This document shows, piece by piece, positions 1 to 32,994 of a DNA stretch of 64,000 nucleotides (positions are counted from its first letter, which is position 1; every line of letters starts with the position of its first letter). The DNA is from Paragordius varius. Its lineage: Eukaryota > Animalia > Nematomorpha. Under the pieces are notes generated by a model, which saw nothing but the letters and a program-made list of their open reading frames with translations, was not told the origin of the DNA and made no database searches. The position numbers and the translations under genes were made by a program. Where the stretch lies: the NCBI GenBank assembly GCA_964247055.1, contig OZ176050.1, forward strand, positions 868,001 to 932,000, read 5' to 3'.

Positions 1-3000
1 GGGTAGCCCTATGGTAGTTCCATCATCATCCCAAATATTTTCGAGATCGGAGTATAAATGTAATTTTTATATATTTTTTAAATATTTAAAAAATTTATTT
101 TATACGATTTTAAAAATAAAAATGGCTACCTAAAATCCAAATTTGATCAGGTGATGTCACCATATTTTTTTTTGGGTAGCCCTATGGTAGTTCCATCATC
201 ACCCCAAATATTTTCGAGATCGGAGTATAAATGTAATTTTTATGAATTTTTAAATATTTAAAAAATTTATTTTATAGGATTTTAAAAATAAAAATGGCTA
301 CCTAAAATCCAAATTTGATCAGGTGATGTCGCCATAATTTTTTTTGCGTAGCCCTATGGTAGTTCCATCATCACCCCAAATATTTTCGAGATCGGAGTAT
401 AAGTGTAATTTTTTTGAATTTTTTAAATATTTAAAAAATTTATTTTATACGATTTTAAAAATAAAAATGGCTACCTAAAATCCAAATTTGATCAGGTGAT
501 GTCACTATAATTTTTTTGGGTAGCCCTATGGTAGTTCCATCATCACCCCAAATATTTTCGAGATCGGAGTATAAATGTAATTTTTATGAATTTTTTAAAT
601 ATTTAAAAAATTTATTTTATACGATTTTAAAAATAAAAATGGCTACCTGAAATCCAAATTTGATCAGGTGATGTCGCTATAATTTTTTTTGGGTAGCCCT
701 ATGGTAGTTCCATCATGACCCCAAATATTTTGGGGATCGGACTATAAATGTAATTTTTATGAAATTTTTAAATATTTAAAAAATTTATTTTATACGATTT
801 TAAAAATAAAAATGGCTACCTAAAATCCAAATTTGATCAGGTGATGTCACCATAATTTTTTTTGGGTAGCCCTATGGTAGTTCCATCATCACCCCAAATA
901 TTTTCGAGATCGGAGTATAAATATAATTTTTATGAATTTTTTAAATATTTAAAAAATTTATTTTATACGATTTTAAAAATAAAAATGGCTACCTAAAATC
1001 CAAATTTGATCAGGTGATGTCACCATAATTTTTTTGGGTAGCCCTATGGTAGTTCCATCATCACCCCAAATATTTTCGAGATCGGAGTATAAATGTAATT
1101 TTTATGAATTTTTTAAATATTTAAAAAATTTATTTTATACGATTTTAAAAATAAAAATGGCTACCTAAAATCCAAATTTGATCAGGTGATGTCGCCATAA
1201 TTTTTTTTGGGTAGCCCTATGGTAGTTCCATCATCACCCCAAATATTGTCGAGATCGGAGTATAAATGTGATTTTTATGAATTTTTTAAATATTTAAAAA
1301 ATTTATTTTATACGATTTTAAAATAAAAATGGCTACCAAAAATCCAAATTTGATCAGGTGATGTCGCCATAATTTTTTGTGGGTAGCCCTATGGTAGTTC
1401 CATCATCACCCCAAATATTTTCGAGATCGGAGTATAAATGTAATTTTTATGAATTTTTTAAATATTTAAAAAATTTATTTTCGATTTTAAAAATAAAAAT
1501 GGCTACCTAAAATCCAAATTTGATCAGGTGATGTCACCATAATTTTTTTTGGGTAGCCTTATGGTAGTTCCATCATCACCCCAAATATTTTCGAGATCGG
1601 AGTATAAATGTAATTTTTATGAATTTTTTAAATATTTAAAAAATTTATTTTATACGATTTTAAAAATAAAAATGGCCTACCTAAAATCCAAATTTGATCA
1701 GGTGATGTCACCATAATTTTTTTTGGGTAGCCCTATGGTAGTTCCATCATCACCCCAAATATTTTCGAGATCGGAGTATAAATGTAATTTTTATGAATTT
1801 TTAAATATTTAAAAAATTTATTTTATAGGATTTTAAAAATAAAAATGGCTACCTAAAATCCAAATTTGATCAGGTGATGTCGCCATAATTTTTTTTGCGT
1901 AGCCCTATGGTAGTTCCATCATCACCCCAAATATTTTCGAGATCGGAGTATAAGTGTAATTTTTTTGAATTTTTTAAATATTTAAAAAATTTATTTTATA
2001 CGATTTTAAAAATAAAAATGGCTACCTAAAATCCAAATTTGATCAGGTGATGTCACTATAATTTTTTTGGGTAGCCCTATGGTAGTTCCATCATCACCCC
2101 AAATATTTTCGAGATCGGAGTATAAATGTAATTTTTATGAATTTTTTAAATATTTAAAAAATTTATTTTATACGATTTTAAAAATAAAAATGGCTACCTG
2201 AAATCCAAATTTGATCAGGTGATGTCGCTATAATTTTTTTTGGGTAGCCCTATGGTAGTTCCATCATGACCCCAAATATTTTGGGGATCGGACTATAAAT
2301 GTAATTTTTATGAAATTTTTAAATATTTAAAAAATTTATTTTATACGATTTTAAAAATAAAAATGGCTACCTAAAATCCAAATTTGATCAGGTGATGTCA
2401 CCATAATTTTTTTTGGGTAGCCCTATGGTAGTTCCATCATCACCCCAAATATTTTCGAGATCGGAGTATAAATATAATTTTTATGAATTTTTTAAATATT
2501 TAAAAAATTTATTTTATACGATTTTAAAAATAAAAATGGCTACCTAAAATCCAAATTTGATCAGGTGATGTCACCATAATTTTTTTGGGTAGCCCTATGG
2601 TAGTTCCATCATCACCCCAAATATTTTCGAGATCGGAGTATAAATGTAATTTTTATGAATTTTTTAAATATTTAAAAAATTTATTTTATACGATTTTAAA
2701 AATAAAAATGGCTACCTAAAATCCAAATTTGATCAGGTGATGTCGCCATAATTTTTTTTGGGTAGCCCTATGGTAGTTCCATCATCACCCCAAATATTGT
2801 CGAGATCGGAGTATAAATGTAGTTTTTTTGAATTTTTTAAATATTTAAAAAATTTATTTTATACGATTTTAAAAATAAAAATGGCTACCTAAAATCCGAA
2901 TTTGATCAGGTGATGTCACCATAATTTTTTTTGGGTAGCCCTATGGTAGTTCCATCATCACCCCAAATATTTTCGAGATCGGAGTATAAATGTAATTTTT

Positions 3001-4099
3001 ATGAATTTTTTAAATATTTAAAAAATTTATTTTATACGATTTTAAAAATAAAAATGGCTACCTAAAATCCAAATTTGATCAGGTGATGTCACCATATTTT
3101 TTTTTGGGTAGCCCTATGGTAGTTCCATCATCACCCCAAATATTGTCGAGATCGGAGTATAAATGTAATTTTTTTGAATTTTTTAAATATTTAAAAAATT
3201 TATTTTATACGATTTTAAAAATAAAAATGGCTACCTAAAATCCAAATTTGATCAGGTGATGTCACCATAATTTTTTTTGGGTAGCCCTATGGTAGTTCCA
3301 TCATAACCCCAAATATTTTTGAGATCCGACTTTAAATGTAATTTTTTTGAATTTTTTAAATATTTAAAAAATTTATTTTATACGATTTTAAAAATAAAAA
3401 TGGCTACCTAAAATCCAAATTTGATCAGGTGATGTCGCCATAATTTTTTTTGGGTAGCCCTATGGTAGTTCCATCATAACCCCAACTATTTTTGAGATCG
3501 GACTTTAAATGTAATTTTTTTGAATTTTTTAAATATTTAAAAAATTTATTTTATACGATTTTAAAAATAAAAATGGCTAATCCAAATTTGATCAGGTGAT
3601 GTCACCATAATTTTTTTTGGGTAGCCCTATGGTAGTTCCATCATCACCCCAAATATTTTCGAGATCGGAGTATAAATGTAATTTTTATGAATTTTTTAAA
3701 TATTTAAAAAATTTATTTTATACGATTTTAAAAATAAAAATGGCTACCTAAAATCCAAATTTGATCAGGTGATGTCACTATAATTTTTTTGGGTAGCCCT
3801 ATGGTAGTTCCATCATCACCCCAAATATTTTGGGGATCGGACTATAAATGTAATTTTTATGAATTTTTTAAATATTTAAAAAATTTATTTTATACGATTT
3901 TAAAAATAAAAATGGCTACCTAAAATCCAAATTTGATCAGGTGATGTCACCATAATTTTTTTTGGGTAGCCCTATGGTAGTTCCATCATCACCCCAAATA
4001 TTTTGGGGATCGGACTATAAATGTAATTTTTATGAATTTTTTAAATATTTAAAAAATTTATTTTATACGATTTTAAAAATAAAAATGGCTACCTAAAAT

Positions 4100-7000
4100 C
4101 CAAATTTGATCAGGTGATGTCGCCATAATTTTTTTTGCGTAGCCCTATGGTAGTTCCATCATCACCCCAAATATTTTCGAGATCGGAGTATAAGTGTAAT
4201 TTTTTTGAATTTTTTAAATATTTAAAAAATTTATTTTATACGATTTTAAAAATAAAAATGGCTAAATAAAATCCAAATTTGATCAGGTGATGTCACTATA
4301 ATTTTTTTGGGTAGCCCTATGGTAGTTCCATCATCACCCCAAATATTTTCGAGATCGGAGTATAAATGTAATTTTTATGAATTTTTTAAATATTTAAAAA
4401 ATTTATTTTATACGATTTTAAAAATAAAAATGGCTACCTGAAATCCAAATTTGATCAGGTGATGTCGCTATAATTTTTTTTGGGTAGCCCTATGGTAGTT
4501 CCATCATGACCCCAAATATTTTGGGGATCGGACTATAAATGTAATTTTTATGAAATTTTTAAATATTTAAAAAATTTATTTTATACGATTTTAAAAATAA
4601 AAATGGCTACCTAAAATCCAAATTTGATCAGGTGATGTCACCATAATTTTTTTTGGGTAGCCCTATGGTAGTTCCATCATCACCCCAAATATTTTCGAGA
4701 TCGGAGTATAAATGTAATTTTTATGAATTTTTTAAATATTTAAAAAATTTATTTTAAACGATTTTAAAAATAAAAATGGCTACCTAAAATCCGAATTTGA
4801 TCAGGTGATGTCACCATAATTTTTTTTGGGTAGCCCTATGGTAGTTCCATCATCACCCCAAATATTTTCGAGATCGGAGTATAAATGTAATTTTTATGAA
4901 TTTTTTAAATATTTAAAAAATTTATTTTATACGATTTTAAAAATAAAAATGGCTACCTAAAATCCAAATTTGATCAGGTGATGTCACCATATTTTTTTTT
5001 GGGTAGCCCTATGGTAGTTCCATCATCACCCCAAATATTGTCGAGATCGGAGTATAAATGTAATTTTTTTGAATTTTTTAAATATTTAAAAAATTTATTT
5101 TATACGATTTTAAAAATAAAAATGGCTACCTAAAATCCAAATTTGATCAGGTGATGTCGCCATAATTTTTTTTGGGTAGCCCTATGGTAGTTCCATCATA
5201 ACCCCAAATATTTTTGAGATCCGACTTTAAATGTAATTTTTTTGAATTTTTTAAATATTTAAAAAATTTATTTTATACGATTTTAAAAATAAAAATGGCT
5301 ACCTAAAATCCAAATTTGATCAGGTGATGTCGCCATAATTTTTTTTGGGTAGCCCTATGGTAGTTCCATCATAACCCCAACTATTTTTGAGATCGGACTT
5401 TAAATGTAATTTTTTTGAATTTTTTAAATATTTAAAAAATTTATTTTATACGATTTTAAAAATAAAAATGGCTACCTAAAATCCAAATTTGATCAGGTGA
5501 TGTCGCCATAATTTTTTTTGGGTAGCCCTATGGTAGTTCCATCATCACCCCAAATATTTTCGAGATCGGAGTATAAATGTAATTTTTATGAATTTTTTAA
5601 ATATTTAAAAAATTTATTTTATACGATTTTAAAAATAAAAATGGCTACCTAAAATCCAAATTTGATCAGGTGATGTCACCATAATTTTTTGGGTAGCCCT
5701 ATGGTAGTTCCATCATCACCCCAAATATTTTCGAGATCGGAGTATAAATGTAATTTTTATGAATTTTTTAAATATTTAAAAAATTTATTTTATACGATTT
5801 TAAAAATAAAAATGGCTACCTAAAATCCAAATTTGATCAGGTAATGTCGCCATAATTTTTTTTGGGTAGCCCTATAGTAGTTCCATCATCACCCCAAATA
5901 TTTTGGAGGATCGGACTATAAATGTAATTTTTATGAATTTTGTAAATATTTAAAAAATTTATTTTATACGATTTTAAAAATAAAAATGGCTACCTAAAAT
6001 CCAAATTTGATCAGGTGATGTCACCATAATTTTTTTTGGGTAGCCCTATGGTAGTTCCATCATCACCCCAAATATTTTCGAGATCGGAGTCTAAATGTAA
6101 TTTTTATGAATTTTTTAAATATTTAAAAAATTTATTTTATACGATATTAAAAATAAAAATGGCTACCTAAAATCCAAATTTGATCAGGTGATGTCACCAT
6201 AATTTTTTTTGGGTAGCCCTATGGTAATTCCATCATCACCCCAAATATTTTCGAGATCGGAGTATAAATGTAATTTTTATGAATTTTTTAAATATTTAAA
6301 AAATTTATTTTATACGATTTTAAAAATAAAAATGGCTACCTATCCAAATTTGATCAGGTGATGTCACCATAATTGTTTTTAGGTTACCCTATGATAATTC
6401 CATCATCACCCCAAATATTGTCGAGATCGGAGTATAAATGTAATTTTTTTGAATTTTTTAAATATTTAAAAAATTTATTTTATACCATTTTAAAAATAAA
6501 AATGGCTACCTAAAATCAAAATTTGATCAGGTGATGTCGCCATAATTTTGTTTGGGTAGCCCTATGGTAGTTCCATCATCACCCCAAATATTTTGGGGAT
6601 TGGACTATAAATGTAATTTTTATGAATTTTTTAAATATTTAAAAAATTTATTTTATACGATTTTAAAAATAAAAATGGCTACCAAAAATCCAAATTTGAT
6701 CAGGTGATGTCACCATAATTTTTTTAAAATTTATTTTATACGATTTTAAAAATAAAAATGGCTATCTAAAATCCAAATTTGATCAGGTGATGTCACCATA
6801 ATTTTTTTTGGGTAGCCCTATGGTAGTTCCATCATCACCCCAAATATTTTCGAGATCGGAGTATAAATGTAATTTTTATGAATTTTTTAAATATTTAAAA
6901 AATTTATTTTATACGATTTTAAAAATAAATGGCTACCTAAAATCCAAATTTGATCAGGTGATGTCACCATAATTTTTTTTGGGTAGCCCTATGGTAGTTC

Positions 7001-10000
7001 CATCATCACCCCAAATATTTTCGAGATCGGAGTATAAATGTAATTTTTATGAATTTTTTAAATATTTAAAAAATTTATTTTATACGATTTTAAAAATAAA
7101 AATGGCTACCTATCCAAATTTGATCAGGTGATGTCACCATAATTGTTTTTGGGTAGCCCTATGATAATTCCATCATCACCCCAAATATTGTCGAGATCGG
7201 AGTATAAATGTAATTTTTTTGAATTTTTTAAATATTTAAAAAATTTATTTTATACGATTTTAAAAATAAAAATGGCTACCTAAAATCAAAATTTGATCAG
7301 GTGATGTCGCCATAATTTTTTTTGGGTAGCCCTATGGTAGTTCCATCATCACCCCAAATATTTTGGGGATCGGACTATAAATGTAATTTTTATGAATTTT
7401 TTAAATATTTAAAAAATTTATTTTATACGATTTTAAAAATAAAAATGGCTACCTAAAATCCAAATTTGATCAGGTGATGTCTCCATAATTTTTTTGGGTA
7501 GCCCTATGGTAGTTCCATCATCACCCCAAATATTTTGGGGTTCGGACTATAAATGTAATTTTTATGAATTTTTTAAATATTTAAAAAATTTATTTTATAC
7601 GATTTTAAAAATCAAAATGGCTACCTAAAATCCAAATTGGATCAGGTGATGTCACTATAATTTTTTTGGGTAGCCCTATGGTAGTTCCATCATCACCCCA
7701 AATATTTTGGGGATCGGAGTATAAATGTAATTTTTATGAATTTTTTAAATATTTAAAAAATTTATTTTATACGATTAAAATAAAAATGGCTACCTAAAAT
7801 CCAAATTTGATCAGGTGATGTCACCATAATTTTTTTTGGGTAGCCCTATGGTAGTTCCATCATCACCCCAAATATTTTCGAGATCGGAGTACAAATGTAT
7901 TTTTTATGAATTTTTTAAATATTTAAAAAATTTATTTTATACGATTTTAAAAATAAAAATGGCTACCTAAAATCCAAATTTGATCAGGTGATGTCACCAT
8001 AATTTTTTTTGGGTAGCCCTATGGTAGTTCCATCATCACCCCAAATATTTTCGAGATCGGAGTCTAAATGTAATTTTTATGAATTTTTTAAATATTTAAA
8101 AAATTTATTTTATACGATATTAAAAATAAAAATGTCTACCTAAAATCCAAATTTGATCAGGTGATGTCACCATAATTTTTTTTGGGTAGCCCTATGGTAA
8201 TTCCATCATCACCCCAAATATTGTCGAGATCGGAGTATAAATGTAATTTTTTTGAATTTTTTAAATATTTAAAAAATTTATTTTATACGATTTTAAAAAT
8301 AAAAATGGCTACCTAAAATCCAAATTTGATCAGGTGATGTCACCATAATTTTTTTGGGTAGCCCTATGGTTGTTCCATCATCACCTCAAATATTTTCGAG
8401 ATCGGAGTATAAATGTAATTTTTATGAATTTTTTAAATATTTAAAAAATTTATTTTATACGATTTTAAAAATAAAAATGGCTACCTTAAATCCAAATGTG
8501 ATCAGGTGATATCACCATAATTTTTTTGGGTAGCCCTATGGTAGTTCCATCATCACCCCAAATATTTTCGAGATCGGAGTATAAATGTAATTTTTATGAA
8601 TTTTTTAAATATTTAAAAAATTTATTTTATACGATTTTAAAAATAAATGGCTACCTAAAATCCAAATTTGATCAGGTGATGTCACCATAATTTTTTTTGG
8701 GTAGCCCTATGGTAGTTCCATCATCACCCCAAATATTTTCGAGATCGGAGTATAAATGTAATTTTTATGAATTTTTTAAATATTTAAAAAATTTATTTTA
8801 TACGATTTTAAAAATAAAAATGGCTACCTATCCAAATTTGATCAGGTGATGTCACCATAATTGTTTTTGGGTTACCCTATGATAATTCCATCATCACCCC
8901 AAATATTGTCGAGATCGGAGTATAAATATAATTTTTTTGAATTTTTTAAATATTTAAAAAATTTATTTTATACGATTTTAAAAATAAAAATGGCTACCTA
9001 AAATCAAAATTTGATCAGGTGATGTCGCCATAATTTTGCTTGGGTAGCCCTATGGTAGTTCCATCATCACCCCAAATATTTTGGGGATCGGACTATAAAT
9101 GTAATTTTTATGAATTTTTTAAATATTTAAAAAATTTATTTTATACGATTTTAAAAATAAAAATGGCTACCAAAAATCCAAATTTGATCAGGTGATGTCA
9201 CCATAATTTTTTTAAAATTTATTTTATACGATTTTAAAAATAAAAATGGCTACCTAAAATCCAAATTTGATCAGGTGATGTCACCATAATTTTTTTTGGG
9301 TAGCCCTATGGTAGTTCCATCATCACCCCAAATATTTTCGAGATCGGAGTATAAATGTAATTTTTATGAATTTTTTAAATATTTAAAAAATTTATTTTAT
9401 ACGATTTTAAAAATAAATGGCTACCTAAAATCCAAATTTGATCAGGTGATGTCACCATAATTTTTTTTGGGTAGCCCTATGGTAGTTCCATCATCACCCC
9501 AAATATTTTCGAGATCGGAGTATAAATGTAATTTTTATGAATTTTTTAAATATTTAAAAAATTTATTTTATACGATTTTAAAAATAAAAATGGCTACCTA
9601 TCCAAATTTGATCAGGTGATGTCACCATAATTGTTTTTGGGTAGCCCTATGATAATTCCATCATCACCCCAAATATTGTCGAGATCGGAGTATAAATGTA
9701 ATTTTTTTGAATTTTTTAAATATTTAAAAAATTTATTTTATACGATTTTAAAAATAAAAATGGCTACCTAAAATCAAAATTTGATCAGGTGATGTCGCCA
9801 TAATTTTGCTTGGGTAGCCCTATGGTAGTTCCATCATCACCCCAAATATTTTGGGGATCGGACTATAAATGTAATTTTTATGAATTTTTTAAATATTTAA
9901 AAAATTTATTTTATACGATTTTAAAAATAAAAATGGCTACCAAAAATCCAAATTTGATCAGGTGATGTCACCATAATTTTTTTAAAATTTATTTTATACG

Positions 10001-13000
10001 ATTTTAAAAATAAAAATGGCTACCTAAAATCCAAATTTGATCAGGTGATGTCACCATAATTTTTTTTGGGTAGCCCTATGGTAGTTCCATCATCACCCCA
10101 AATATTTTCGAGATCGGAGTATAAATGTAATTTTTATGAATTTTTTAAATATTTAAAAAATTTATTTTATACGATTTTAAAAATAAAAATGGCTACCTAA
10201 AATCCAAATTTGATCAGGTGATGTCGCCATAATTTTTTTTGCGTAGCCCTATGGTAGTTCCATCATCACCCCAAATATTTTCGAGATCGGAGTATAAGTG
10301 TAATTTTTTTGAATTTTTTAAATATTTTAAAAATTTATTTTATACGATTTTAAAAATAAAAATGGCTACCTAAAATCCAAATTTGATCAGGTGATGTCAC
10401 TATAATTTTTTTGGGTAGCCCTATGGTAGTTCCATCATCAACTCAAATATTTTCGAGATCGGAGTATAAATGTAATTTTTATGAATTTTTTAAATATTTA
10501 AAAAATTTATTTTATACGATTTTAAAAATAAAAATGGCTACCTGAAATCCAAATTTGATCAGGTGATGTCGCTATAATTTTTTTTGGGTAGCCCTATGGT
10601 AGTTCCATCATGACCCCAAATATTTTGGGGATCGGACTATAAATGTAATTTTTATGAAATTTTTAAATATTTAAAAAATTTATTTTATACGATTTTAAAA
10701 ATAAAAATGGCTACCTAAAATCCAAATTTGATCAGGTGATGTCACCATAATTTTTTTTGGGTAGCCCTATGGTAGTTCCATCATCACCCCAAATATTTTC
10801 GAGATCGGAGTATAAATGTAATTTTTATGAATTTTTTAAATATTTAAAAAATTTATTTTATACGATTTTAAAAATAAAAATGGCTACCTAAAATCCGAAT
10901 TTGATCAGGTGATGTCACCATAATTTTTTTTGGGTAGCCCTATGGTAGTTCCATCATCACCCCAAATATTTTCGAGATCGGAGTATAAATGTAATTTTTA
11001 TGAATTTTTTAAATATTTAAAAAATTTATTTTATACGATTTTAAAAATAAAAATGGCTACCTAAAATCCAAATTTGATCAGGTGATGTCACCATATTTTT
11101 TTTTGGGTAGCCCTATGGTAGTTCCATCATCACCCCAAATATTGTCGAGATCGGAGTATAAATGTAATTTTTTTGAATTTTTTAAATATTTAAAAAATTT
11201 ATTTTATACGATTTTAAAAATAAAAATGGCTACCTAAAATCCAAATTTGATCAGGTGATGTCGCCATAATTTTTTTTGGGTAGCCCTATGGTAGTTCCAT
11301 CATAACCCCAAATATTTTTGAGATCCGACTTTAAATGTAATTTTTTTGAATTTTTTAAATATTTAAAAAATTTATTTTATACGATTTTAAAAATAAAAAT
11401 GGCTACCTAAAATCCAAATTTGATCAGGTGATGTCGCCATAATTTTTTTTGGGTAGCCCTATGGTAGTTCCATCATAACCCCAACTATTTTTGAGATCGG
11501 ACTTTAAATGTAATTTTTTTGAATTTTTTAAATATTTAAAAAATTTATTTTATACGATTTTAAAAATAAAAATGGCTACCTAAAATCCAAATTTGATCAG
11601 GTGATGTCGCCATAATTTTTTTTGGGTAGCCCTATGGTAGTTCCATCATCACCCCAAATATTTTCGAGATCGGAGTATAAATGTAATTTTTATGAATTTT
11701 TTAAATATTTAAAAAATTTATTTTATACGATTTTAAAAATAAAAATGGCTACCTAAAATCCAAATTTGATCAGGTGATGTCACCATAATTTTTTGGGTAG
11801 CCCTATGGTAGTTCCATCATCACCCCAAATATTTTCGAGATCGGAGTATAAATGTAATTTTTATGAATTTTTTAAATATTTAAAAAATTTATTTTATACG
11901 ATTTTAAAAATAAAAATGGCTACCTAAAATCCAAATTTGATCAGGTGATGTCGCCATAATTTTTTTTGGGTAGCCCTATGGTAGTTCCATCATAACCCCA
12001 ACTATTTTTGAGATCGGACTTTAAATGTAATTTTTTTGAATTTTTTAAATATTTAAAAAATTTATTTTATACGATTTTAAAAATAAAAATGGCTACCTAA
12101 AATCCAAATTTGATCAGGTGATGTCGCCATAATTTTTTTTGGGTAGCCCTATGGTAGTTCCATCATCACCCCAAATATTTTCGAGATCGGAGTATAAATG
12201 TAATTTTTATGAATTTTTTAAATATTTAAAAAATTTATTTTATACGATTTTAAAAATAAAAATGGCTACCTAAAATCCAAATTTGATCAGGTGATGTCAC
12301 CATAATTTTTTGGGTAGCCCTATGGTAGTTCCATCATCACCCCAAATATTTTCGAGATCGGAGTATAAATGTAATTTTTATGAATTTTTTAAATATTTAA
12401 AAAATTTATTTTATACGATTTTAAAAATAAAAATGACTACCTAAAATCCAAATTTGATCAGGTAATGTCGCCATAATTTTTTTTGGGTAGCCCTATAGTA
12501 GTTCCATCATCACCCCAAATATTTTGGAGGATCGGACTATAAATGTAATTTTTATGAATTTTGTAAATATTTAAAAAATTTATTTTATACGATTTTAAAA
12601 ATAAAAATGGCTACCTAAAATCCAAATTTGATCAGGTGATGTCACCATAATTTTTTTTGGGTAGCCCTATGGTAGTTCCATCATCACCCCAAATATTTTC
12701 GAGATCGGAGTCTAAATGTAATTTTTATGAATTTTTTAAATATTTAAAAAATTTATTTTATACGATATTAAAAATAAAAATGGCTACCTAAAATCCAAAT
12801 TTGATCAGGTGATGTCACCATAATTTTTTTTGGGTAGCCCTATGGTAATTCCATCATCACCCCAAATATTTTCGAGATCGGAGTATAAATGTAATTTTTA
12901 TGAATTTTTTAAATATTTAAAAAATTTATTTTATACGATTTTAAAAATAAAAATGGCTACCTATCCAAATTTGATCAGGTGATGTCACCATAATTGTTTT

Positions 13001-16000
13001 TAGGTTACCCTATGATAATTCCATCATCACCCCAAATATTGTCGAGATCGGAGTATAAATGTAATTTTTTTGAATTTTTTAAATATTTAAAAAATTTATT
13101 TTATACCATTTTAAAAATAAAAATGGCTACCTAAAATCAAAATTTGATCAGGTGATGTCGCCATAATTTTGTTTGGGTAGCCCTATGGTAGTTCCATCAT
13201 CACCCCAAATATTTTGGGGATTGGACTATAAATGTAATTTTTATGAATTTTTTAAATATTTAAAAAATTTATTTTATACGATTTTAAAAATAAAAATGGC
13301 TACCAAAAATCCAAATTTGATCAGGTGATGTCACCATAATTTTTTTAAAATTTATTTTATACGATTTTAAAAATAAAAATGGCTACCTAAAATCCAAATT
13401 TGATCAGGTGATGTCACCATAATTTTTTTTGGGTAGCCCTATGGTAGTTCCATCATCACCCCAAATATTTTCGAGATCGGAGTATAAATGTAATTTTTAT
13501 GAATTTTTTAAATATTTAAAAAATTTATTTTATACGATTTTAAAAATAAATGGCTACCTAAAATCCAAATTTGATCAGGTGATGTCACCATAATTTTTTT
13601 TGGGTAGCCCTATGGTAGTTCCATCATCACCCCAAATATTTTCGAGATCGGAGTATAAATGTAATTTTTATGAATTTTTTAAATATTTAAAAAATTTATT
13701 TTATACGATTTTAAAAATAAAAATGGCTACCTATCCAAATTTGATCAGGTGATGTCACCATAATTGTTTTTGGGTAGCCCTATGATAATTCCATCATCAC
13801 CCCAAATATTGTCGAGATCGGAGTATAAATGTAATTTTTTTGAATTTTTTAAATATTTAAAAAATTTATTTTATACGATTTTAAAAATAAAAATGGCTAC
13901 CTAAAATCAAAATTTGATCAGGTGATGTCGCCATAATTTTTTTTGGGTAGCCCTATGGTAGTTCCATCATCACCCCAAATATTTTGGGGATCGGACTATA
14001 AATGTAATTTTTATGAATTTTTTAAATATTTAAAAAATTTATTTTATACGATTTTAAAAATAAAAATGGCTACCTAAAATCCAAATTTGATCAGGTGATG
14101 TCTCCATAATTTTTTTGGGTAGCCCTATGGTAGTTCCATCATCACCCCAAATATTTTGGGGTTCGGACTATAAATGTAATTTTTATGAATTTTTTAAATA
14201 TTTAAAAAATTTATTTTATACGATTTTAAAAATCAAAATGGCTACCTAAAATCCAAATTGGATCAGGTGATGTCACTATAATTTTTTTGGGTAGCCCTAT
14301 GGTAGTTCCATCATCACCCCAAATATTTTGGGGATCGGAGTATAAATGTAATTTTTATGAATTTTTTAAATATTTAAAAAATTTATTTTATACGATTAAA
14401 ATAAAAATGGCTACCTAAAATCCAAATTTGATCAGGTGATGTCACCATAATTTTTTTTGGGTAGCCCTATGGTAGTTCCATCATCACCCCAAATATTTTC
14501 GAGATCGGAGTACAAATGTAATTTTTATGAATTTTTTAAATATTTAAAAAATTTATTTTATACGATTTTAAAAATAAAAATGGCTACCTAAAATCCAAAT
14601 TTGATCAGGTGATGTCACCATAATTTTTTTTGGGTAGCCCTATGGTAGTTCCATCATCACCCCAAATATTTTCGAGATCGGAGTCTAAATGTAATTTTTA
14701 TGAATTTTTTAAATATTTAAAAAATTTATTTTATACGATATTAAAAATAAAAATGTCTACCTAAAATCCAAATTTGATCAGGTGATGTCACCATAATTTT
14801 TTTTGGGTAGCCCTATGGTAATTCCATCATCACCCCAAATATTGTCGAGATCGGAGTATAAATGTAATTTTTTTGAATTTTTTAAATATTTAAAAAATTT
14901 ATTTTATACGATTTTAAAAATAAAAATGGCTACCTAAAATCCAAATTTGATCAGGTGATGTCACCATAATTTTTTTGGGTAGCCCTATGGTTGTTCCATC
15001 ATCACCTCAAATATTTTCGAGATCGGAGTATAAATGTAATTTTTATGAATTTTTTAAATATTTAAAAAATTTATTTTATACGATTTTAAAAATAAAAATG
15101 GCTACCTTAAATCCAAATGTGATCAGGTGATATCACCATAATTTTTTTGGGTAGCCCTATGGTAGTTCCATCATCACCCCAAATATTTTCGAGATCGGAG
15201 TATAAATGTAATTTTTATGAATTTTTTAAATATTTAAAAAATTTATTTTATACGATTTTAAAAATAAATGGCTACCTAAAATCCAAATTTGATCAGGTGA
15301 TGTCACCATAATTTTTTTTGGGTAGCCCTATGGTAGTTCCATCATCACCCCAAATATTTTCGAGATCGGAGTATAAATGTAATTTTTATGAATTTTTTAA
15401 ATATTTAAAAAATTTATTTTATACGATTTTAAAAATAAAAATGGCTACCTATCCAAATTTGATCAGGTGATGTCACCATAATTGTTTTTGGGTTACCCTA
15501 TGATAATTCCATCATCACCCCAAATATTGTCGAGATCGGAGTATAAATATAATTTTTTTGAATTTTTTAAATATTTAAAAAATTTATTTTATACGATTTT
15601 AAAAATAAAAATGGCTACCTAAAATCAAAATTTGATCAGGTGATGTCGCCATAATTTTGCTTGGGTAGCCCTATGGTAGTTCCATCATCACCCCAAATAT
15701 TTTGGGGATCGGACTATAAATGTAATTTTTATGAATTTTTTAAATATTTAAAAAATTTATTTTATACGATTTTAAAAATAAAAATGGCTACCAAAAATCC
15801 AAATTTGATCAGGTGATGTCACCATAATTTTTTTAAAATTTATTTTATACGATTTTAAAAATAAAAATGGCTACCTAAAATCCAAATTTGATCAGGTGAT
15901 GTCACCATAATTTTTTTTGGGTAGCCCTATGGTAGTTCCATCATCACCCCAAATATTTTCGAGATCGGAGTATAAATGTAATTTTTATGAATTTTTTAAA

Positions 16001-16400: not shown

Positions 16401-19400
16401 TTTGATCAGGTGATGTCGCCATAATTTTTTTTGGGTAGCCCTATGGTAGTTCCATCATCACCCCAAATATTTTGGGGATCGGACTATAAATGTAATTTTT
16501 ATGAATTTTTTAAATATTTAAAAAATTTATTTTATACGATTTTAAAAATCAAAATGGCTACCTAAAATCCAAATTTGATCAGGTGATGTCACTATAATTT
16601 TTTTGGGTAGCCCTATGGTAGTTCCATCATCACCTCAAATATTTTGGGGATCGGACTATAAATGTAATTTTTATGAATTTTTTAAATATTTAAAAAATTT
16701 ATTTTATAGGATTTTAAAAATAAAAATGGCTACCAAAAATCCAAATTTGATCAGGTGATGTCACCATAATTTTTTTAAAATTTATTTTATACGATTTTAA
16801 AAATAAAAATGGCTACCTAAAATCCAAATTTGATCAGATGATGTCACCATAATTTTTTTTGGGTAGCCCTATGGTAGTTCCATCATCACCCCAAATATTT
16901 TCGAGATCGGAGTATAAATCTAATTTTTATGAATTTTTTAAATATTTAAAAAATTTATTTTATACGATATTAAAAATAAAAATGGCTACCTAAAATCCAA
17001 ATTTGATCAGGTGATGTCACCTTAATTTTTTTTGGGTAGCCCTATGGTAATTCCATCATCACCCCAAATATTTTGGGGATCGGACTATAAATGTAATTTT
17101 TATGAATTTTTTAAATATTTAAAAAATTTATTTTATACGATTTTAAAAATAAAAATGGCTACCTAAAATCCAAATTTGATCAGGTGATGTCACTATAATT
17201 TTTTTTGGGTAGCCCTATGGTAGTTCCATCATCACCCCAAATATTTTCGAGATCGGAGTATAAATGTAATTTTTATGAATTTTTTAAATATTTAAAAAAT
17301 TTATTTTATACGATTTTAAAATAAAAATGGCTACCTAAAATCCAAATTTGATCAGGTGATGTCACCATAATTTTTTTTGGGTAGCCCTATGGTAGTTCCA
17401 TCATCACCCCAAATATTGTCGAGATCGGAGTATAAATGTAATTTTTTTGAATTTTTTAAATATTTAAAAAATTTATTTTATACGATTTTAAAAATAAAAA
17501 TGGCTACCTAAAATCCAAATTTGATCAGGTGATGTCGCCATAATTTTTTTTGCGTAGCCCTATGTAGTTTCATCATCACCCCAAATATTTTGGGGATCGG
17601 ACTATAAATGTAATTTTTATGAATTTTTAAATATTTAAAAAATTTATTTTATACGATTTTAAAAATAAAAATGGCTACCTAAAATCCAAATTTGATCAGG
17701 TGATGTCACCATAATTTTTTTTGGGTAGCCCTATGGTAGTTCCATCATCACCCCAAATATTTTCGAGATCGGAGTATAAATGTAATTTTTATGAATTTTT
17801 TAAATATTTAAAAAATTGATTTTATACGATTTTAAAAATAAAAATGGCTACCTAAAATCAAAATTTGATCAGGTGATGTCACCATATTTTTTTTGGTAGC
17901 CCTATGGTAGTTCCATCATCACCCCAAATATTTTGGGGATCGGACTATAAATGTAATTTTTATGAATTTTTTAAATATTTAAAAAATTTATTTTATACGA
18001 TTTTAAAAATAAAAATGGCTACCTAAAATCCAAATTTGATCAGGTGATGTCACTATAATTTTTTTGGGTAGCCCTATGGTAGTTGTATCATCACCTCAAA
18101 TATTTTGGGGATCGGACTATAAATGTAATTTTTATGAATTTTTTAAATATTTAAAAAATTTATTTTATACGATTTTAAAAATAAAAATGGCTACCTAAAA
18201 TCCAAATTTGATCAGGTGATGTCACCATAATTTTTTTGGGTAGCCCTATGGTAGTTCCATCATCACCCCAAATATTTTCGAGATCGGAGTATAAATGTAA
18301 TTTTTATGAATTTTTAAAATATTTAAAAAATTTATTTTATACGATTTTAAAAATAAAAATGGCTACCTAAAATCAAAATTTGATCAGGTGATGTCACCAT
18401 AATTTTTTTTGGTAGCCCTATGGTAGTTCCATCATCACCCCAAATATTTTGGGGATCGGACTATAAATGTAATTTTTATGAATTTTTTAAATATTTAAAA
18501 AATTTATTTTATACGATTTTAAAAATAAAAATGGCTACCTAAAATCCAAATTTGATCAGGTGATGTCACTATAATTTTTTTGGGTAGCCCTATGGTAGTT
18601 CCATCATCACCTCAAATATTTTGGGGATCGGACTATAAATGTAATTTTTATGAATTTTTTAAATATTTAAAAAATTTATTTTATACGATTTTAAAAATAA
18701 AAATGGCTACCTAAAATCCAAATTTGATCAGGTGATGTCACCATAATTTTTTTGGGTAGCCCTATGGTAGTTCCATCATCACCCCAAATATTTTCGAGAT
18801 CGGAGTATAAATGTAATTTTTATGAATTTTTAAAATATTTAAAAAATTTATTTTATACGATTTTAAAAATAAAAATGGCTACCTAAAATCAAAATTTGAT
18901 CAGGTGATGTCACCATAATTTTTTTTGGGTAGCCCTATGGTAGTTCCATCATCACCCCAAATATTGTCGAGATCGGAGTATAAATGTAATTTTTTTGAAT
19001 TTTTTAAATATTTAAAAAATTTATTTTATACGATTTTAAAAATAAAAATGGCTACCTACAATCCAAATTTGATCAGGTGATGTCGCCATAATTTTTTTTG
19101 CGTAGCCCTATGTAGTTTCATCATCACCCCAAATATTTTGGGGATCGGACTATAAATGTAATTTTTATGAATTTTTTAAATATTTAAAAAATTTATTTTA
19201 TACGATTTTAAAAATAAAAATGGCTACCTAAAATCCAAATTTGATCAGGTGATGTCACCATAATTTTTTTTGGGTAGCCCTATGGTAGTTCCATCATCAC
19301 CCCAAATATTTTCGAGATCGGAGTATAAATGTAATTTTTATGAATTTTTTAAATATTTAAAAAATTGATTTTATACGATTTTAAAAATAAAAATGGCTAC

Positions 19401-29810: not shown

Positions 29811-29813
29811 TAA
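29811..29813 (+). other. Target-site duplication TAA (left copy)
   Basis: Uninterrupted monomers read GGACTA-TAA-ATGTAA. Here the sequence reads GGACTA-TAA-[element]-TAA-ATGTAA. Confidence 0.92.
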
Positions 29814-30549
29814 CACTGTGCAACAAAATATGGGGTCAATTTTCTGGACTCGATTTTCTAAATATTTTCTAATTCCTTATAGTATTTTGATCAGATTTGC
29901 GTAAAAAATTTTTTTACTTACCCAGCTCGTTTTCGAGATATGGGACTTTTTCCATATTTGGACATATCCAAAATTTTCTTGTTTGTAAATATTTTTCGCT
30001 ATGTAAACAAATAATATGTGGCTTACATAAGTGTTTTTACAAGAAATTACCAATTTATCTTTAAAATAAAAAAAAAATTTACTCAAAATATCCAATACAT
30101 TTTGTTTTAGGGGGCAAAAACCCTCAAAAATTGGGTAACTTAACATTTTTTTACACAAATATTTTTTATCAATTTATTAAATCAAAACAAACTTTATTAT
30201 ATGTTCTTGGATGTTAATAATGTTTGTTTAAGTATAAATATCACTTTGTAATAGCTTTGTGGACTTTAATTTTTAAAAATAAATTTAATTTTTACAGCTT
30301 TTTAGCTGTTTTTTTTATGTAAAAAATAATTTATTTTACTCAGCTGTAAATACTAATTTCATTTTTTCATCTGAAATTTTTAAATATTTACCATATATGA
30401 TGTGTTCAACAATACTATTATGCCTTAAAATATAATCCTAACCAAGTAATTGTTTATTTTAAAATTTAGGATGACTGATGGGTTGTTATGTTTAAATTGA
30501 CCTTATATTAGTTAGCTTATGAAAATATAATATTCTTCTCTCTTACCTT
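29814..30549 (+). repeat. Left inverted arm of the transposon (terminal heptamer, asymmetric spacer, long arm)
   Basis: 29840-30397 is the reverse complement of 32419-32976 with about 7 substitutions counted by eye (~99%). 30398-30549 continues to align to 32230-32369 at clearly lower identity, with indels. Confidence 0.95.
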
Positions 30550-30555
30550 TGGCCG

Positions 30556-30809
30556 ATGACAGATTTAATTGAGAAAAAACTAATGAACATAGAAAAGCGG
30601 ATGCAAAATTTATTCCACCCCAATAAGTTACACTACATCTCGAAGGTAACAATAACAGGGGTAGACCAACATCTAACTGGAAAAAAACAATAAATATTGA
30701 TATAAATGTTGCCAACATTGATGATAACGCCTGGCAGGATCGCAAATATTACAGACAGCTTCTATACGGATACAATGGCTAGCCATTACACAAAGACGAT
30801 ACGATACGA
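30556..30809 (+). pseudogene. Decayed 3' end of an RTE-like non-LTR retrotransposon ORF plus short tandem tail
   Basis: 30627-30782 translates as VTLHLEGNNNRGRPTSNWKKTINIDINVANIDDNAWQDRKYYRQLLYGYNG*. This matches the recalled C-terminal pattern G..RGRP..W...I.............W.DR..WR of RTE-clade reverse transcriptases. An upstream frame gives TDLIEKKL..KRM, similar to the preceding IEKK.L.W.GH..RM block. (ACGAT)~3 follows at 30796-30809. Motif recognition only; no search was run. Confidence 0.45.
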
Positions 30810-31138
30810 AAAGCATTTTTTGCATATTCACCGTCTCTATGAGTGCTTCCTACTCGAACGGCCCAAAAACGCCCCCCTCTAAATAGTTACATAGATTTTT
30901 GCTGTGAGATACAATATTTTTACCCGTGTAATAAGCGAAAAAAAGAATTTATTATAGCATAAAAAATTATATATATCGTGTATAAAATATATTGCATTAT
31001 ATATAGTTTTAAAGCAATGTTGCATTAAGTATGGCCATGTAAATGAGCCAATTTTCAACCTCATTCACCTGGATTATGAGGAAACATATGTTTGAGGGAG
31101 GTGATTGAGTTTTTGAGGTGGGAGTTTTGAAAATTTTT

Positions 31139-31387
31139 ATCAGTATGATGGATAACAGGTCTACACGCGATTTAGGTTATTTTGTTCAAATAATTTATAG
31201 CATCCATCTTTACGAATACCGTAAATAATTTTAGCAATGGCGAAGGCTTGTTTTGTATTTTAATCAATATGATGAAAACAGTTACACGCGATTTATATGC
31301 GGGTCTTATTAAAAAGTTTTGTTTAAATAATTTCTAGATATATGTGCCTCTTTATGGATCCGTAAATTTAGCAATAACGAAAAGCTT
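31139..31387 (+). repeat. Two diverged direct repeats (~111 and ~125 bp, offset 124 bp)
   Basis: 31139-31249 and 31263-31387 share ordered blocks ATCA(G/A)TATGATG, TACACGCGATTTA, TTTTGTT(C/T)AAATAATTT(A/C)TAG, CCGTAAAT, TTAGCAAT and CGAA..GCTT. Confidence 0.8.
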
Positions 31388-31429
31388 AAGGTCTGGGAGG
31401 CTTTAGCCGAAGAAATGATCAATATTTAA
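31331..31429 (+). pseudogene. MADF/Myb-SANT-like DNA-binding domain remnant
   Basis: The frame between two stops reads FLDICASLWIRKFSNNEKLKVWEALAEEMINI*. It resembles the MADF pattern LW.....Y.N...K..AW..IA..L with a shortened spacer. The match is short, with no start codon or full domain. Confidence 0.35.
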
Positions 31430-32229
31430 ATATTTATAAAATATATTCATTTATTGTGTAAAAATAAATTATTAAAAATTATGTCAAATTAAATCGTTTC
31501 TCTGATCTACTCCTGTCTGATGGCTATTCAATATAGGTGTTGTCTGATCTTCTGATATAAAGTTTGCTAACTCATTTTCGTCAATGTTACCTATCATGGA
31601 AATATGTATTACCGAATAATCCGATCATTAGTAAGTAGCAGAGTTTCATGTCTAAAATAAACCAAATTTAAAAATACTCGATAGTATTCCTGATGATTTT
31701 ACCATTTAAAATGGTTTCAAGTGAGGAACAAATTATATGATGACATATTCTAAATTCTTGAAAAAAGATATCAGTAGTTATACAATGATTTTCTAAATAT
31801 TCTGTTAAACTTGCTTATAAACTTCAACTAACTACGATTTCTTGCCTAAATATAAAAAAATAAAGCACTAAAACATTATAACCTTTAGTAAGCATCTGCC
31901 CGAAAAATATTTTTTGATAAATGTCCAAATTTTCCATAACCTACCATATACATATATTAAATTTACTTTATTTAGGCTAATAGAGTTTTCAGATTCCAAA
32001 AATTCTTCCGAGTTCTCGAGATATCGACTTTTGTGATAACCTTAACCCTGAACCAGGATTAAAAATTCTTCCATCTCAACAGGATGAGGAAGGCTCATTC
32101 ACTCGGATTATTAAAAGTGGTAAATGAGCCGGCTTAACTGGCTTATTCACATGGCCCTTAGATGAAAGCATTCACAACCAAGATAATATACATTTTTAGC
32201 GTAACAAGGACAAAGGTGTATTATGCACT

Positions 32230-32991
32230 AAGATAAGAGAGAAGGATAATATTATATTTTCATAAGCTAACAAATTAAGGTAAATTATTAAACATAACAA
32301 CCCGACTATCATCCTACTTGGTTAGGATTATATTTTAAGGCATAAAATTTAGTATTCTTGAACACATCATCCAGGTATCCAGAAAAGGGTGTGAGAGGCT
32401 TGCTCCTTACCGTCACTGTATATGGTAAATATTTAAAAATTTCAGATGAAAAAATGAAATTAGTATTTACAGCTGAGTAAAATAAATCATTTTTTACATA
32501 AAAAAAACAGCAAAAAAGCTGTAAAAATTAAATTTATTTTTAAAAATTAAAGTCCACAAAGCTATTACAAAGTGATATTTATACTTAAACAAACATTATT
32601 AACATCCAAGAACATATAATAAAGTTTGTTTTGATTTAATAAATTGATAAAAAATATTTGTGTATAAAAATGTTAAGTTACCCAATTTTTGAGGGTTTTT
32701 GCCCCCTAAAACAAAATGTATTGGATATTTTGAGTAAATTTTTTTTTTATTTTAAAGATAAATTGGTAATTTCTTGTAAAAACACTTATGTAAGCCACAT
32801 ATTATTTGTTTACATAGCGAAAAATATTTACAAACAAGAAAATTTTGGATATGTCCAAATATGGAAAAAGTCCCATATCTCGAAAACGAGCTGGGTAAGT
32901 AAAAAAAATTTTTACGCAAATCTCATCACAATACTATAAGGAATCAGAAAATATTTAGAAAATCGAGTCCAGAAAAAGTTGTGTCACAGTG
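32230..32991 (-). repeat. Right inverted arm of the transposon
   Basis: Reverse complement of the left arm. It carries an extra 49 nt (32370-32418) that the left arm lacks, and it lacks ~19 nt present in the left arm. The mirror-image 93-aa ORFs in the ORF track independently show the symmetry. Confidence 0.95.
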
Positions 32992-32994
32992 TAA
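32992..32994 (+). other. Target-site duplication TAA (right copy)
   Basis: TAA directly follows the terminal CACAGTG and precedes ATGTAATTTTTATG of the resumed monomer. Confidence 0.92.

Follow-up and report, generated by a model that had tools for sequence, protein, structure and literature searches.

The Chapaev3 group of DNA transposons was reportedly set out by Kapitonov and Jurka in 2008. Its members are recognized by a TWA target-site duplication lying between A and T (A-TWA-T), by tips of the form CAC..GTG and by C2C, LH and H4H motifs in the transposase (PMC4079192). The Chapaev3 families Merrow, Garfield and Conan come from Zhang et al. 2014, a paper in which end asymmetry is not mentioned (PMC4079192). 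Chapaev3 has been placed as the most distant clade of the superfamily that includes Transib and the RAG-like transposons (PMC4411706), and other authors have grouped it with CACTA/Mirage (PMC4079192). Asymmetric ends have been described in Transib5 of D. melanogaster, in Transib2/N1-N3 of A. gambiae and in PflRAGL-A, which has a 10-bp asymmetry and a heptamer-TR2-spacer-nonamer-like layout, and the asymmetric ends of a few Transib and RAG-like transposons have been used in debates over the ancestor of the V(D)J signals, or RSSs (PMC8355894, PMC10462144). The origin of the 12/23 rule is still debated, and a literature search found no paper joining Chapaev, asymmetric and RSS.

The window analyzed here, a stretch of 64,000 nucleotides of Paragordius varius DNA with a GC content of 26%, holds a 3178-bp element (29814-32991) that is flanked on both sides by a duplicated TAA and lies within satellite DNA of 173-bp period. 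Its features are as follows:

1-64000, no strand: host satellite array of about 368 units of 173 bp, interrupted by the element (period 173, 84% matches, whole window)
29811-29813, plus strand: left TAA target-site duplication, 3 bp
29814-29826, plus strand: left terminal 13-mer, made up of the heptamer CACTGTG (29814-29820) and the A-rich CAACAA
29821-29843, plus strand: long-end patch, the 23 nt behind the heptamer and the sole left-specific sequence
29844-30397, plus strand: left arm of the long inverted repeat, opening with the shared block CTGGACTCG (29844-29852)
30398-32418, no strand: non-coding interior without transposase, common to at least six other copies of about 3.1 kb
30418-30448/32315-32345 and 30507-30539/32243-32275: short inverted-repeat pieces of the interior
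32419-32972, minus strand: right arm of the long inverted repeat, closing with the shared block CTGGACTCG (32964-32972)
32973-32984, minus strand: short-end patch, the 12 nt behind the heptamer
32985-32991, minus strand: right terminal heptamer, CACAGTG on the plus strand and CACTGTG read inward
32992-32994, plus strand: right TAA target-site duplication

The first-pass annotation of the window had described these ends, the 3-bp duplication and a single asymmetric patch between arms about 99% identical over some 550 bp. Re-reading of the coordinates bears this out: 23 nt stand behind CACTGTG at one end and 12 nt at the other, an 11-bp difference, and the arms (29840-30397 and 32419-32976) are 99% complementary over 558 nt. 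The 3-bp duplication is real, since 74 uninterrupted satellite monomers in the window each hold a single TAA at the insertion point. The element is a transposon, as annotated. The non-coding subfamily to which it belongs has at least seven copies. A comparison of the interior with LINE protein gave no match, and a search within the arms for repeats of the long patch found only a 7-mer.

Placement of the element in Chapaev3 rests on the hallmarks of the group, namely target, tips and motifs, all read from sequence. Among 19 full copies, the target-site duplication is TAA in 10 and TTA in 7, so that 17/19 have 3 bp rather than the 5 bp of Transib and RAG, as the first-pass annotation had cautioned; the duplication is preceded by A in 17/17 and followed by T in 16/17, giving the target A-TWA-T. 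In one copy, L062, a 5-bp repeat stands on either side. The inverted termini start with 5'-CAC and end with GTG-3', as in Chapaev3. While the window copy is non-coding, sister copies with the same tips (L071, L072, L067 and L070) carry transposase pieces with the C2C, LH and H4H motifs. Compared with full-length relatives, these pieces cover residues 6-543, and L071 and L067 include the N-terminal segment. The first-pass annotation had proposed looking to the longest copy for a transposase. Of the longest copies, L061 (7.45 kb) owes its length only to a nested LINE, and L062 and L063 are without a long open reading frame; the pieces lie in sister copies of about 4.1 kb. The Chapaev3 assignment holds.

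In the P. varius genome the transposase reading frame is broken into short pieces, and homology searches were run on single exons or on the intact proteins of relatives. A large search with one clean exon returned 911 homologues, and the relatives identified bear no family names. The C2C, LH and H4H motifs are invariant in 25 relatives, with C-x2-C and H-x4-H conserved, and an N-terminal profile built from six relatives gave a weak match (E 0.015) to a 137-aa RAG1 chain, 21wb_A. A word search with a 154-aa piece found nothing within its length range. As in other Chapaev3 elements, the transposase may have an N-terminal Chapa-like zinc finger, and the family is found in animals, with relatives in arthropods. 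It differs from other Chapaev3 elements in that its inverted repeats are very long (575 to 1259 bp) and its transposase frame is in pieces.

The fold was taken from a model of one relative, P0098 (pLDDT 83). Residues 168-556 of the model align to residues 459-1008 of RAG1 with Z 18.9 (rmsd 3.9 over 377 aa), and the model matches HzTransib with Z 18.3 and BbRAGL with Z 16.6; the next kind of fold, that of the P element, reaches Z 11.4. Residues 133-166 form a disordered linker, and in the alignment to RAG1 no counterpart of the nonamer-binding domain was aligned. As modeled, the transposase fold is RAG1/Transib-like, with a RAG1-type core carrying a C2-H2 zinc site. These data bear on whether the element could belong to another superfamily, either PIF/Harbinger, for which a 3-bp TWA duplication is also a hallmark, or CACTA/EnSpm, which CACTG tips and a 3-bp duplication resemble. 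Such an assignment is highly improbable: nine transposase pieces compared with Pfam matched no family there, neither DDE_Tnp_4 (PIF/Harbinger) nor Transposase_21 (TNP2-like, CACTA/EnSpm) included, the model of the transposase homologues matches RAG1/Transib far above any other fold, and A-TWA-T is the published Chapaev3 signature (PMC4079192).

When tips were tabulated across copies and related genomes, as the first-pass annotation had envisaged, the P. varius genome yielded 41 long tips and 64 short ones, and all 33 paired copies had one long and one short end; a further 24 short tips are unpaired, and there may be short/short palindromic copies (e.g., near C11:1366930 and C3:4509400). The asymmetry is therefore neither chance nor a private indel. 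A genome-wide survey of CACTGTG...TTTCTGGA returned only a 35-nt and a 24-nt class, plus rare variants of 1-3 nt. The left 13-mer is identical in 28 of the 41 long tips and differs by 1-3 changes in the others. Overall, the element is almost certainly a Chapaev3 transposon with family-wide end asymmetry.

One explanation of the asymmetry is a neutral history, in which the transposase needs only the terminal 13-mer, and the extra turn is an old, inherited indel with no role in synapsis. All P. varius copies come from one ancestor, so the uniform long-short pairing is not independent evidence, and descent alone predicts the same. Likewise, the patch sits at the edge of homology, beyond the reach of recombination, so its survival despite homogenization of the arms (no position in about 530 nt is fixed between left and right) is no proof of selection. 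Against neutrality, the tips, patches included, have diverged 3-4 times less than the arms (0.6% for the long-end patch, compared with 1.3-2.7% for the arms), and subfamilies whose transposase DNA is 78-84% identical keep both tips with 0-2 changes.

Relatives in other genomes weigh further against it. Both ends are available for 17 elements, from P. varius and from elsewhere; in 15 of them the ends are offset by 8-13 bp (mode 10) at one and the same position, compared with 19.5% of mismatched control pairs (n = 272) (binomial P ~7e-7); block scores are near the control mean in 3 of the 15. The offset is +11 in the window element and L083, +12 in L081 and +10 in L100; it is -10 in L091, L092, L098, L099, L108, L118 and L119, -8 in L101 and L167, -9 in L166 and -13 in L150. 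In decayed copies the length is only loosely fixed, as offsets from 8 to 13 within the related group L150/L166/L167 show. The offset recurs at the same position in at least 12 families whose spacer and block sequences are unrelated. The terminal 13-mer type of this family is also present in relatives; across families the heptamer is constant only at CAC(T/A)G. Of the remaining two elements, L126, which has a TTA duplication, is symmetric in its 667-bp ends, as a neutral history would allow, and L093 has no clean offset. Seven further candidates were uninformative: L082 and L095 (sand fly) proved to be nested duplications whose flanks are identical, L087 and L088 are without inverted ends, the contigs of L084 and L089 are cut inside the ends, and the ends of L160 are uncertain. 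According to the first-pass annotation, symmetric or variable spacers in other copies would have made this a copy-specific indel; instead, other copies, diverged subfamilies and 14 foreign elements keep the one-turn offset. Taken together, a neutral history is distinctly unlikely. The offset is very probably a lineage-wide, non-random trait, and the data suggest that ends differing by one turn are the norm in Chapaev3.

The asymmetry looks built-in and resembles the 12/23 signals of antibody-gene recombination. Like V(D)J RSSs, the ends have a heptamer starting with CAC where cleavage is expected, a further conserved block opening with an A/T run, and two spacer classes about one helical turn apart (11 bp in this element); the modeled core has the same fold as that of the RAG enzyme. 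The ends of this element are nonetheless not RSSs. Read inward, the heptamer is CACTGTG at both ends rather than CACAGTG, and the ACAAAAACC nonamer is absent, the shared block opening with a T run here and with an A or T run in relatives; both points had been raised in the first-pass annotation. The distance from tip to block is about 14-17 and 25-28 nt, compared with 19 and 30 in RSSs, and the spacers are conserved within this family, which those of RSSs are not. The 12/23 framing itself shifts, as the same annotation warned, with the point at which the block is taken to begin; measured from the conserved terminal 13-mer, the spacers come to about 6 and 17 nt. The duplication of 3 bp also differs from the 5 bp of RAG and Transib. 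The nonamer-binding domain of RAG1 enforces the 12/23 rule; unlike RAG1-RAG2, this system has no RAG2 partner and no aligned counterpart of that domain.

The ends of Transib and RAG-like transposons, too, are transposon ends rather than immune-gene signals. These transposons share with this family a heptamer, an A-rich conserved stretch, a spacer about 10 bp longer on one side, an A/T-rich block and the modeled transposase fold. In contrast to this family, they make 5-bp duplications and belong to the Transib and RAGL clades, and RAGL-A has a GRPR/K nonamer-binding domain.

A mechanism can be proposed on this basis. The window copy is non-autonomous and belongs to a young DNA transposon of the Chapaev3 group; a transposase apparently still encoded in sister copies of about 4.1 kb (L071 type) probably moves it in trans to this day. 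To judge from the modeled relative, the transposase has a RAG1/Transib-like catalytic core and, joined to it by a flexible linker, an apparent 'Chapa'-like zinc finger at the N terminus. Each end is bipartite, comprising the terminal 13-mer (CACTGTG plus an A-rich hexamer), where cleavage is expected, a spacer, and the shared block opening with an A/T run; one end has about one extra helical turn of spacer, a layout that is fixed in the family and recurs in most Chapaev3 relatives. The transposase would touch each end twice, the tip through its core and the shared block through a second module, and the paired-end complex would be arranged to take one long end together with one short end. The proposed logic would be that of the 12/23 rule and of the asymmetric ends in some Transib/RAG-like transposons.

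As a whole, this explanation (Chapaev3, bipartite ends, asymmetric paired-end complex) is regarded as somewhat probable. Within it, asymmetric synapsis in this family is plausible, and a preference of transposition for long-short pairs is possible, if short of probable. It is more doubtful that Chapaev3 transposases, with neither RAG2 nor an aligned nonamer-binding domain, enforce long-short pairing, and that one-turn synapsis either predates the split of Chapaev3 from Transib/RAG or arose repeatedly on the RAG1 fold. Of the branches with the RAG1 fold, Chapaev3 is the most distant, and it has neither RAG2 nor an aligned nonamer-binding domain. Should the asymmetry prove functional, it would offer a simple system outside the vertebrates, with a single protein, in which to test how uneven spacing is read, and the trait would lie deeper in the family tree or have arisen by convergence; if long-short pairing is enforced, it would be a small system for studying the working and origin of a 12/23-type rule. 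If it is not functional, it would be a warning against arguing RSS ancestry from spacer arithmetic alone.

The extra turn could also be an end-specific accessory site, such as a bent A/T tract, a site for a host bending protein or a regulatory element, that helps one end and imposes no pairing rule. In keeping with this, long spacers often consist of an A run followed by a T run (L098, L099, L101, L119 and L081), and in this family the sequence of the spacers is strongly conserved along with their length, a feature that fits a specific binding site better than a segment serving only to set a distance. Between families, on the other hand, spacer sequences are unrelated, the extra segment shares nothing beyond A/T richness, and it measures about one turn. 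In 4 families the long end is 5' of the transposase and in 11 it is 3'; such independence from the gene speaks against a promoter role. An accessory site is rather unlikely, and a paired-end complex built for unequal ends is preferred. Other transposons with unlike ends do operate with accessory sites. In the P element, piggyBac, Tn7 and Mu, as is proposed here, internal binding sites are unequally far from the tips and the ends are not interchangeable, although their transposases are unrelated or distant and their duplication lengths and tips differ. The end spacings of the P element are 21 and 9 bp.

The window is occupied throughout by a 173-bp satellite (~368 units, 26% GC), which is interrupted by a 3178-bp element. 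The first-pass annotation of the element ends (heptamers, 23 versus 12 nt, arms, and TAA flanks) proved right in all details. From CTGGACTCG onward, the arms are 99% complementary over 558 nt. In 74 uninterrupted satellite monomers within the window, a single TAA occupies the insertion position; these monomers are paralogous empty sites and thus support a 3-bp duplication.

Features of the window
29814-32991: Chapaev3 element interrupting the satellite
Both element ends: CACTGTG, read inward, as the first bases
Left end: 23 nt between CACTGTG and the shared block CTGGACTCG
Right end: 12 nt between CACTGTG and the shared block CTGGACTCG
Both flanks: TAA, 3-bp target-site duplication
6643-6808, 9131-9296, 9901-10066, 13264-13429, 15752-15917, 16694-16859: local 83-bp tandem duplications (96-98% identity) at six places inside the satellite

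The 83-bp duplications suggest a higher-order variant of the 173-bp satellite.

A search of the P. varius genome (110 Mb, 44 contigs) identified 41 long tips (23-nt patch) and 64 short tips (12-nt patch). When convergent tips located ≤15 kb apart were paired, 33 elements of 1.1 to 7.5 kb were delineated, every one of which (33/33) combines one long and one short tip. The tips are almost invariant among 60 fetched ends, and a genome-wide spacing survey (CACTGTG, any 4-40 nt, then TTTCTGGA) returned only 35-nt and 24-nt classes, together with a few 1-3-nt variants and four chance hits. Coordinates and tip strings document that both tips are kept with 0-2 changes in subfamilies of 78-84% transposase-DNA identity (e.g., contig positions C1:3954743-3958222 and C4:691257-696932). 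Divergence from the consensus is 0.6% in the patch versus 1.3-2.7% along the arms. When 30 left arms were compared with 30 right arms, no alignment column in the ~530 nt inward of the patch showed a fixed difference, and the largest left/right allele-frequency difference (0.40) lies at the inner edge, in agreement with the earlier reading of the patch as the sole left/right marker. The one-turn end asymmetry is a family trait and not a private indel. The mixed pairs and the persisting patch can also be read without any pairing rule: common descent by itself yields long-plus-short composition, a patch positioned at the homology edge cannot be erased by arm recombination, and conservation of patch sequence within the family suits a specific site. 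These points count against over-reading the pairing.

Four copies (L072, L073, L075, and L065) carry the transposase-bearing core in the opposite orientation, with respect to the tips, from nine others (L068, L071, L061, L069, L067, L070, L064, L063, and L076), as expected from recombination between inverted arms of 575-1259 bp; tip type is thereby uncoupled from gene orientation.

Arms of ~575 bp are the only part common to the copies, whose interiors differ. The non-coding interior of the window copy is common to at least six other ~3.1-kb copies, so this non-autonomous form has moved repeatedly. The Chapaev3 signature comprises an A|TWA|T target, CAC..GTG tips, and three motifs (Zhang et al. 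2014, PMC4079192). The proposed Chapaev3 classification is upheld by all of these: TAA (10/19) and TTA (7/19) targets preceded by A (17/17) and followed by T (16/17), CAC..GTG tips, and transposase pieces with C-x2-C, LH, and H-x4-H motifs in sister copies. Such pieces occur in a 3722-bp copy (L072) and in the ~4.07-kb L071, where they alternate in frame and together correspond to residues 6-543 of full-length relatives. A Pfam search with the transposase pieces found no model for the protein; a clean exon (L070:1852-2184) used as query retrieved 911 relatives, those named being from a pseudoscorpion, a sand fly, and sawflies.

L061 owes its 7.45-kb length to a nested non-LTR retrotransposon (1103-4027, minus strand) with an uninterrupted 974-aa ORF containing endonuclease and reverse-transcriptase domains. 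In L068 (G000:C7:8152966-8157248), the inverted repeats are lengthened to 1259 bp, and the 5′ part of the gene is replaced by an inverted copy of the transposase 3′ flank, leaving a truncated transposase. At the 6.5-kb copy L062 (G000:C4:9764997-9771464), the flanking duplication is not TWA, as is usual, but a 5-bp direct repeat, CCACT. This repeat matches the 5-bp duplication of Transib/RAG in length and could reflect chance (a probability of ~1 in 1000 for each copy) or an atypical insertion.

Relatives from other genomes and metagenomes were included when CAC/GTG tips matched at ≥9/13 positions and were flanked by identical TAA or TTA; all loci encoding relatives with both tips found by these neutral criteria were kept. 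The offset was read from the highest-scoring diagonal that the left and right ends share.

Offset between ends (positive, long end 5′ of the transposase)
+12: L081
+11: window copy, L083
+10: L100
-8: L101, L167
-9: L166
-10: L091, L092, L098, L099, L108, L118, L119
-13: L150
0: L126
No clean offset: L093

An offset of 8-13 is present in 15/17 elements versus 19.5% of 272 mismatched left/right control pairs (binomial P ~7e-7), where L098, L099, and L167, with block scores at or below the control mean, count solely through agreeing diagonals, and L150, L166, and L167 are mutually related. The asymmetry is family-wide and lineage-wide: other P. varius copies and 14/16 elements elsewhere keep the 8-13 offset, which disposes of the copy-specific indel considered in the first-pass annotation. 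In asymmetric elements, the indel always lies directly behind the conserved terminal 13-mer CACTG..C.ACAA, and the shared block after the spacer opens with a run of A or of T. No common sequence unites the extra segments of different families; they frequently consist of an A run and then a T run, as in the right ends of L098, L099, L101, L118, and L119 and the left end of L081. DNA of this A-run/T-run type has intrinsic curvature or rigidity. L126:1154-5703 (metagenome contig Ga0058701_10007025) stands as the sole clear exception to asymmetry: its 667-bp ends are symmetric and 95% alike, it has a TTA duplication, and its tip is nearly identical to the long tip of the P. varius family. This symmetric relative, the spread of offsets from 8 to 13, and the placement of the long end 5′ of the transposase gene in some families and 3′ in others likewise count against over-reading the pairing.

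A structure model of P0098, a 561-aa relative, was built from a 25-sequence alignment (pLDDT 83) and compared to known structures.

Structural matches to the P0098 model
RAG1 residues 459-1008: Z 18.9, rmsd 3.9 over 377 residues
HzTransib: Z 18.3
Amphioxus RAG-like: Z 16.6
P element transposase (next kind): Z 11.4
Hermes: Z 9.4

The RAG1 match starts C-terminal to the RAG1 nonamer-binding domain; in the model, residues 1-130 fold into a distinct zinc-finger domain, attached through a disordered linker (133-166). Searched as a profile, this N-terminal domain matched a RAG1 chain of 137 aa (E 0.015). The match is no more than suggestive; it agrees with the placement of Chapaev3 within the Transib superfamily, as a clade whose Chapa domain is shared with RAG1 (Kapitonov and Koonin 2015, PMC4411706).

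The family ends are not RSSs, from which they differ in the central heptamer base (CAC(T/A)G alone is constant across families), the lack of a nonamer, tip-to-block distances shorter than the 19 and 30 of RSSs, and a 3-bp duplication. The closest described layouts are the PflRAGL-A ends, with heptamer, A-rich TR2, asymmetric spacer (10-bp asymmetry), and A/T-rich block, and the 12/23-like ends of a few Transibs (PMC10462144, PMC8355894). No link between Chapaev ends and asymmetry was found in the literature searched, much subscription literature and Repbase Reports being outside its scope.

The results demonstrate a bipartite end layout, a recurrent one-turn offset, and a RAG1-like core to which an N-terminal domain is tethered. 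In a working model, the 13-mer, where cleavage takes place, would be bound by the transposase core and the shared block by a second DNA-binding module. An extra helical turn would leave this block on the same helix face, such that the architecture of a paired complex could suit one long end plus one short end, and A/T tracts in the long spacer could create, or help to create, the bend that it requires. A 12/23-like pairing rule would be plausible; a real preference for long-plus-short pairs is possible, if somewhat doubtful.

The contig of a further relative, L089, breaks at both ends (1-35 and 3620-3654) within 11-bp-period repeat arrays containing TCAAGGTCA, with its tips missing; these may be subterminal binding-site arrays of another Chapaev3 family. 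In sand fly contigs L082 and L095, the same Chapaev3-like end with identical flanks occurs three times per locus, direct and inverted, so the element lies within a larger unit that is duplicated or palindromic.
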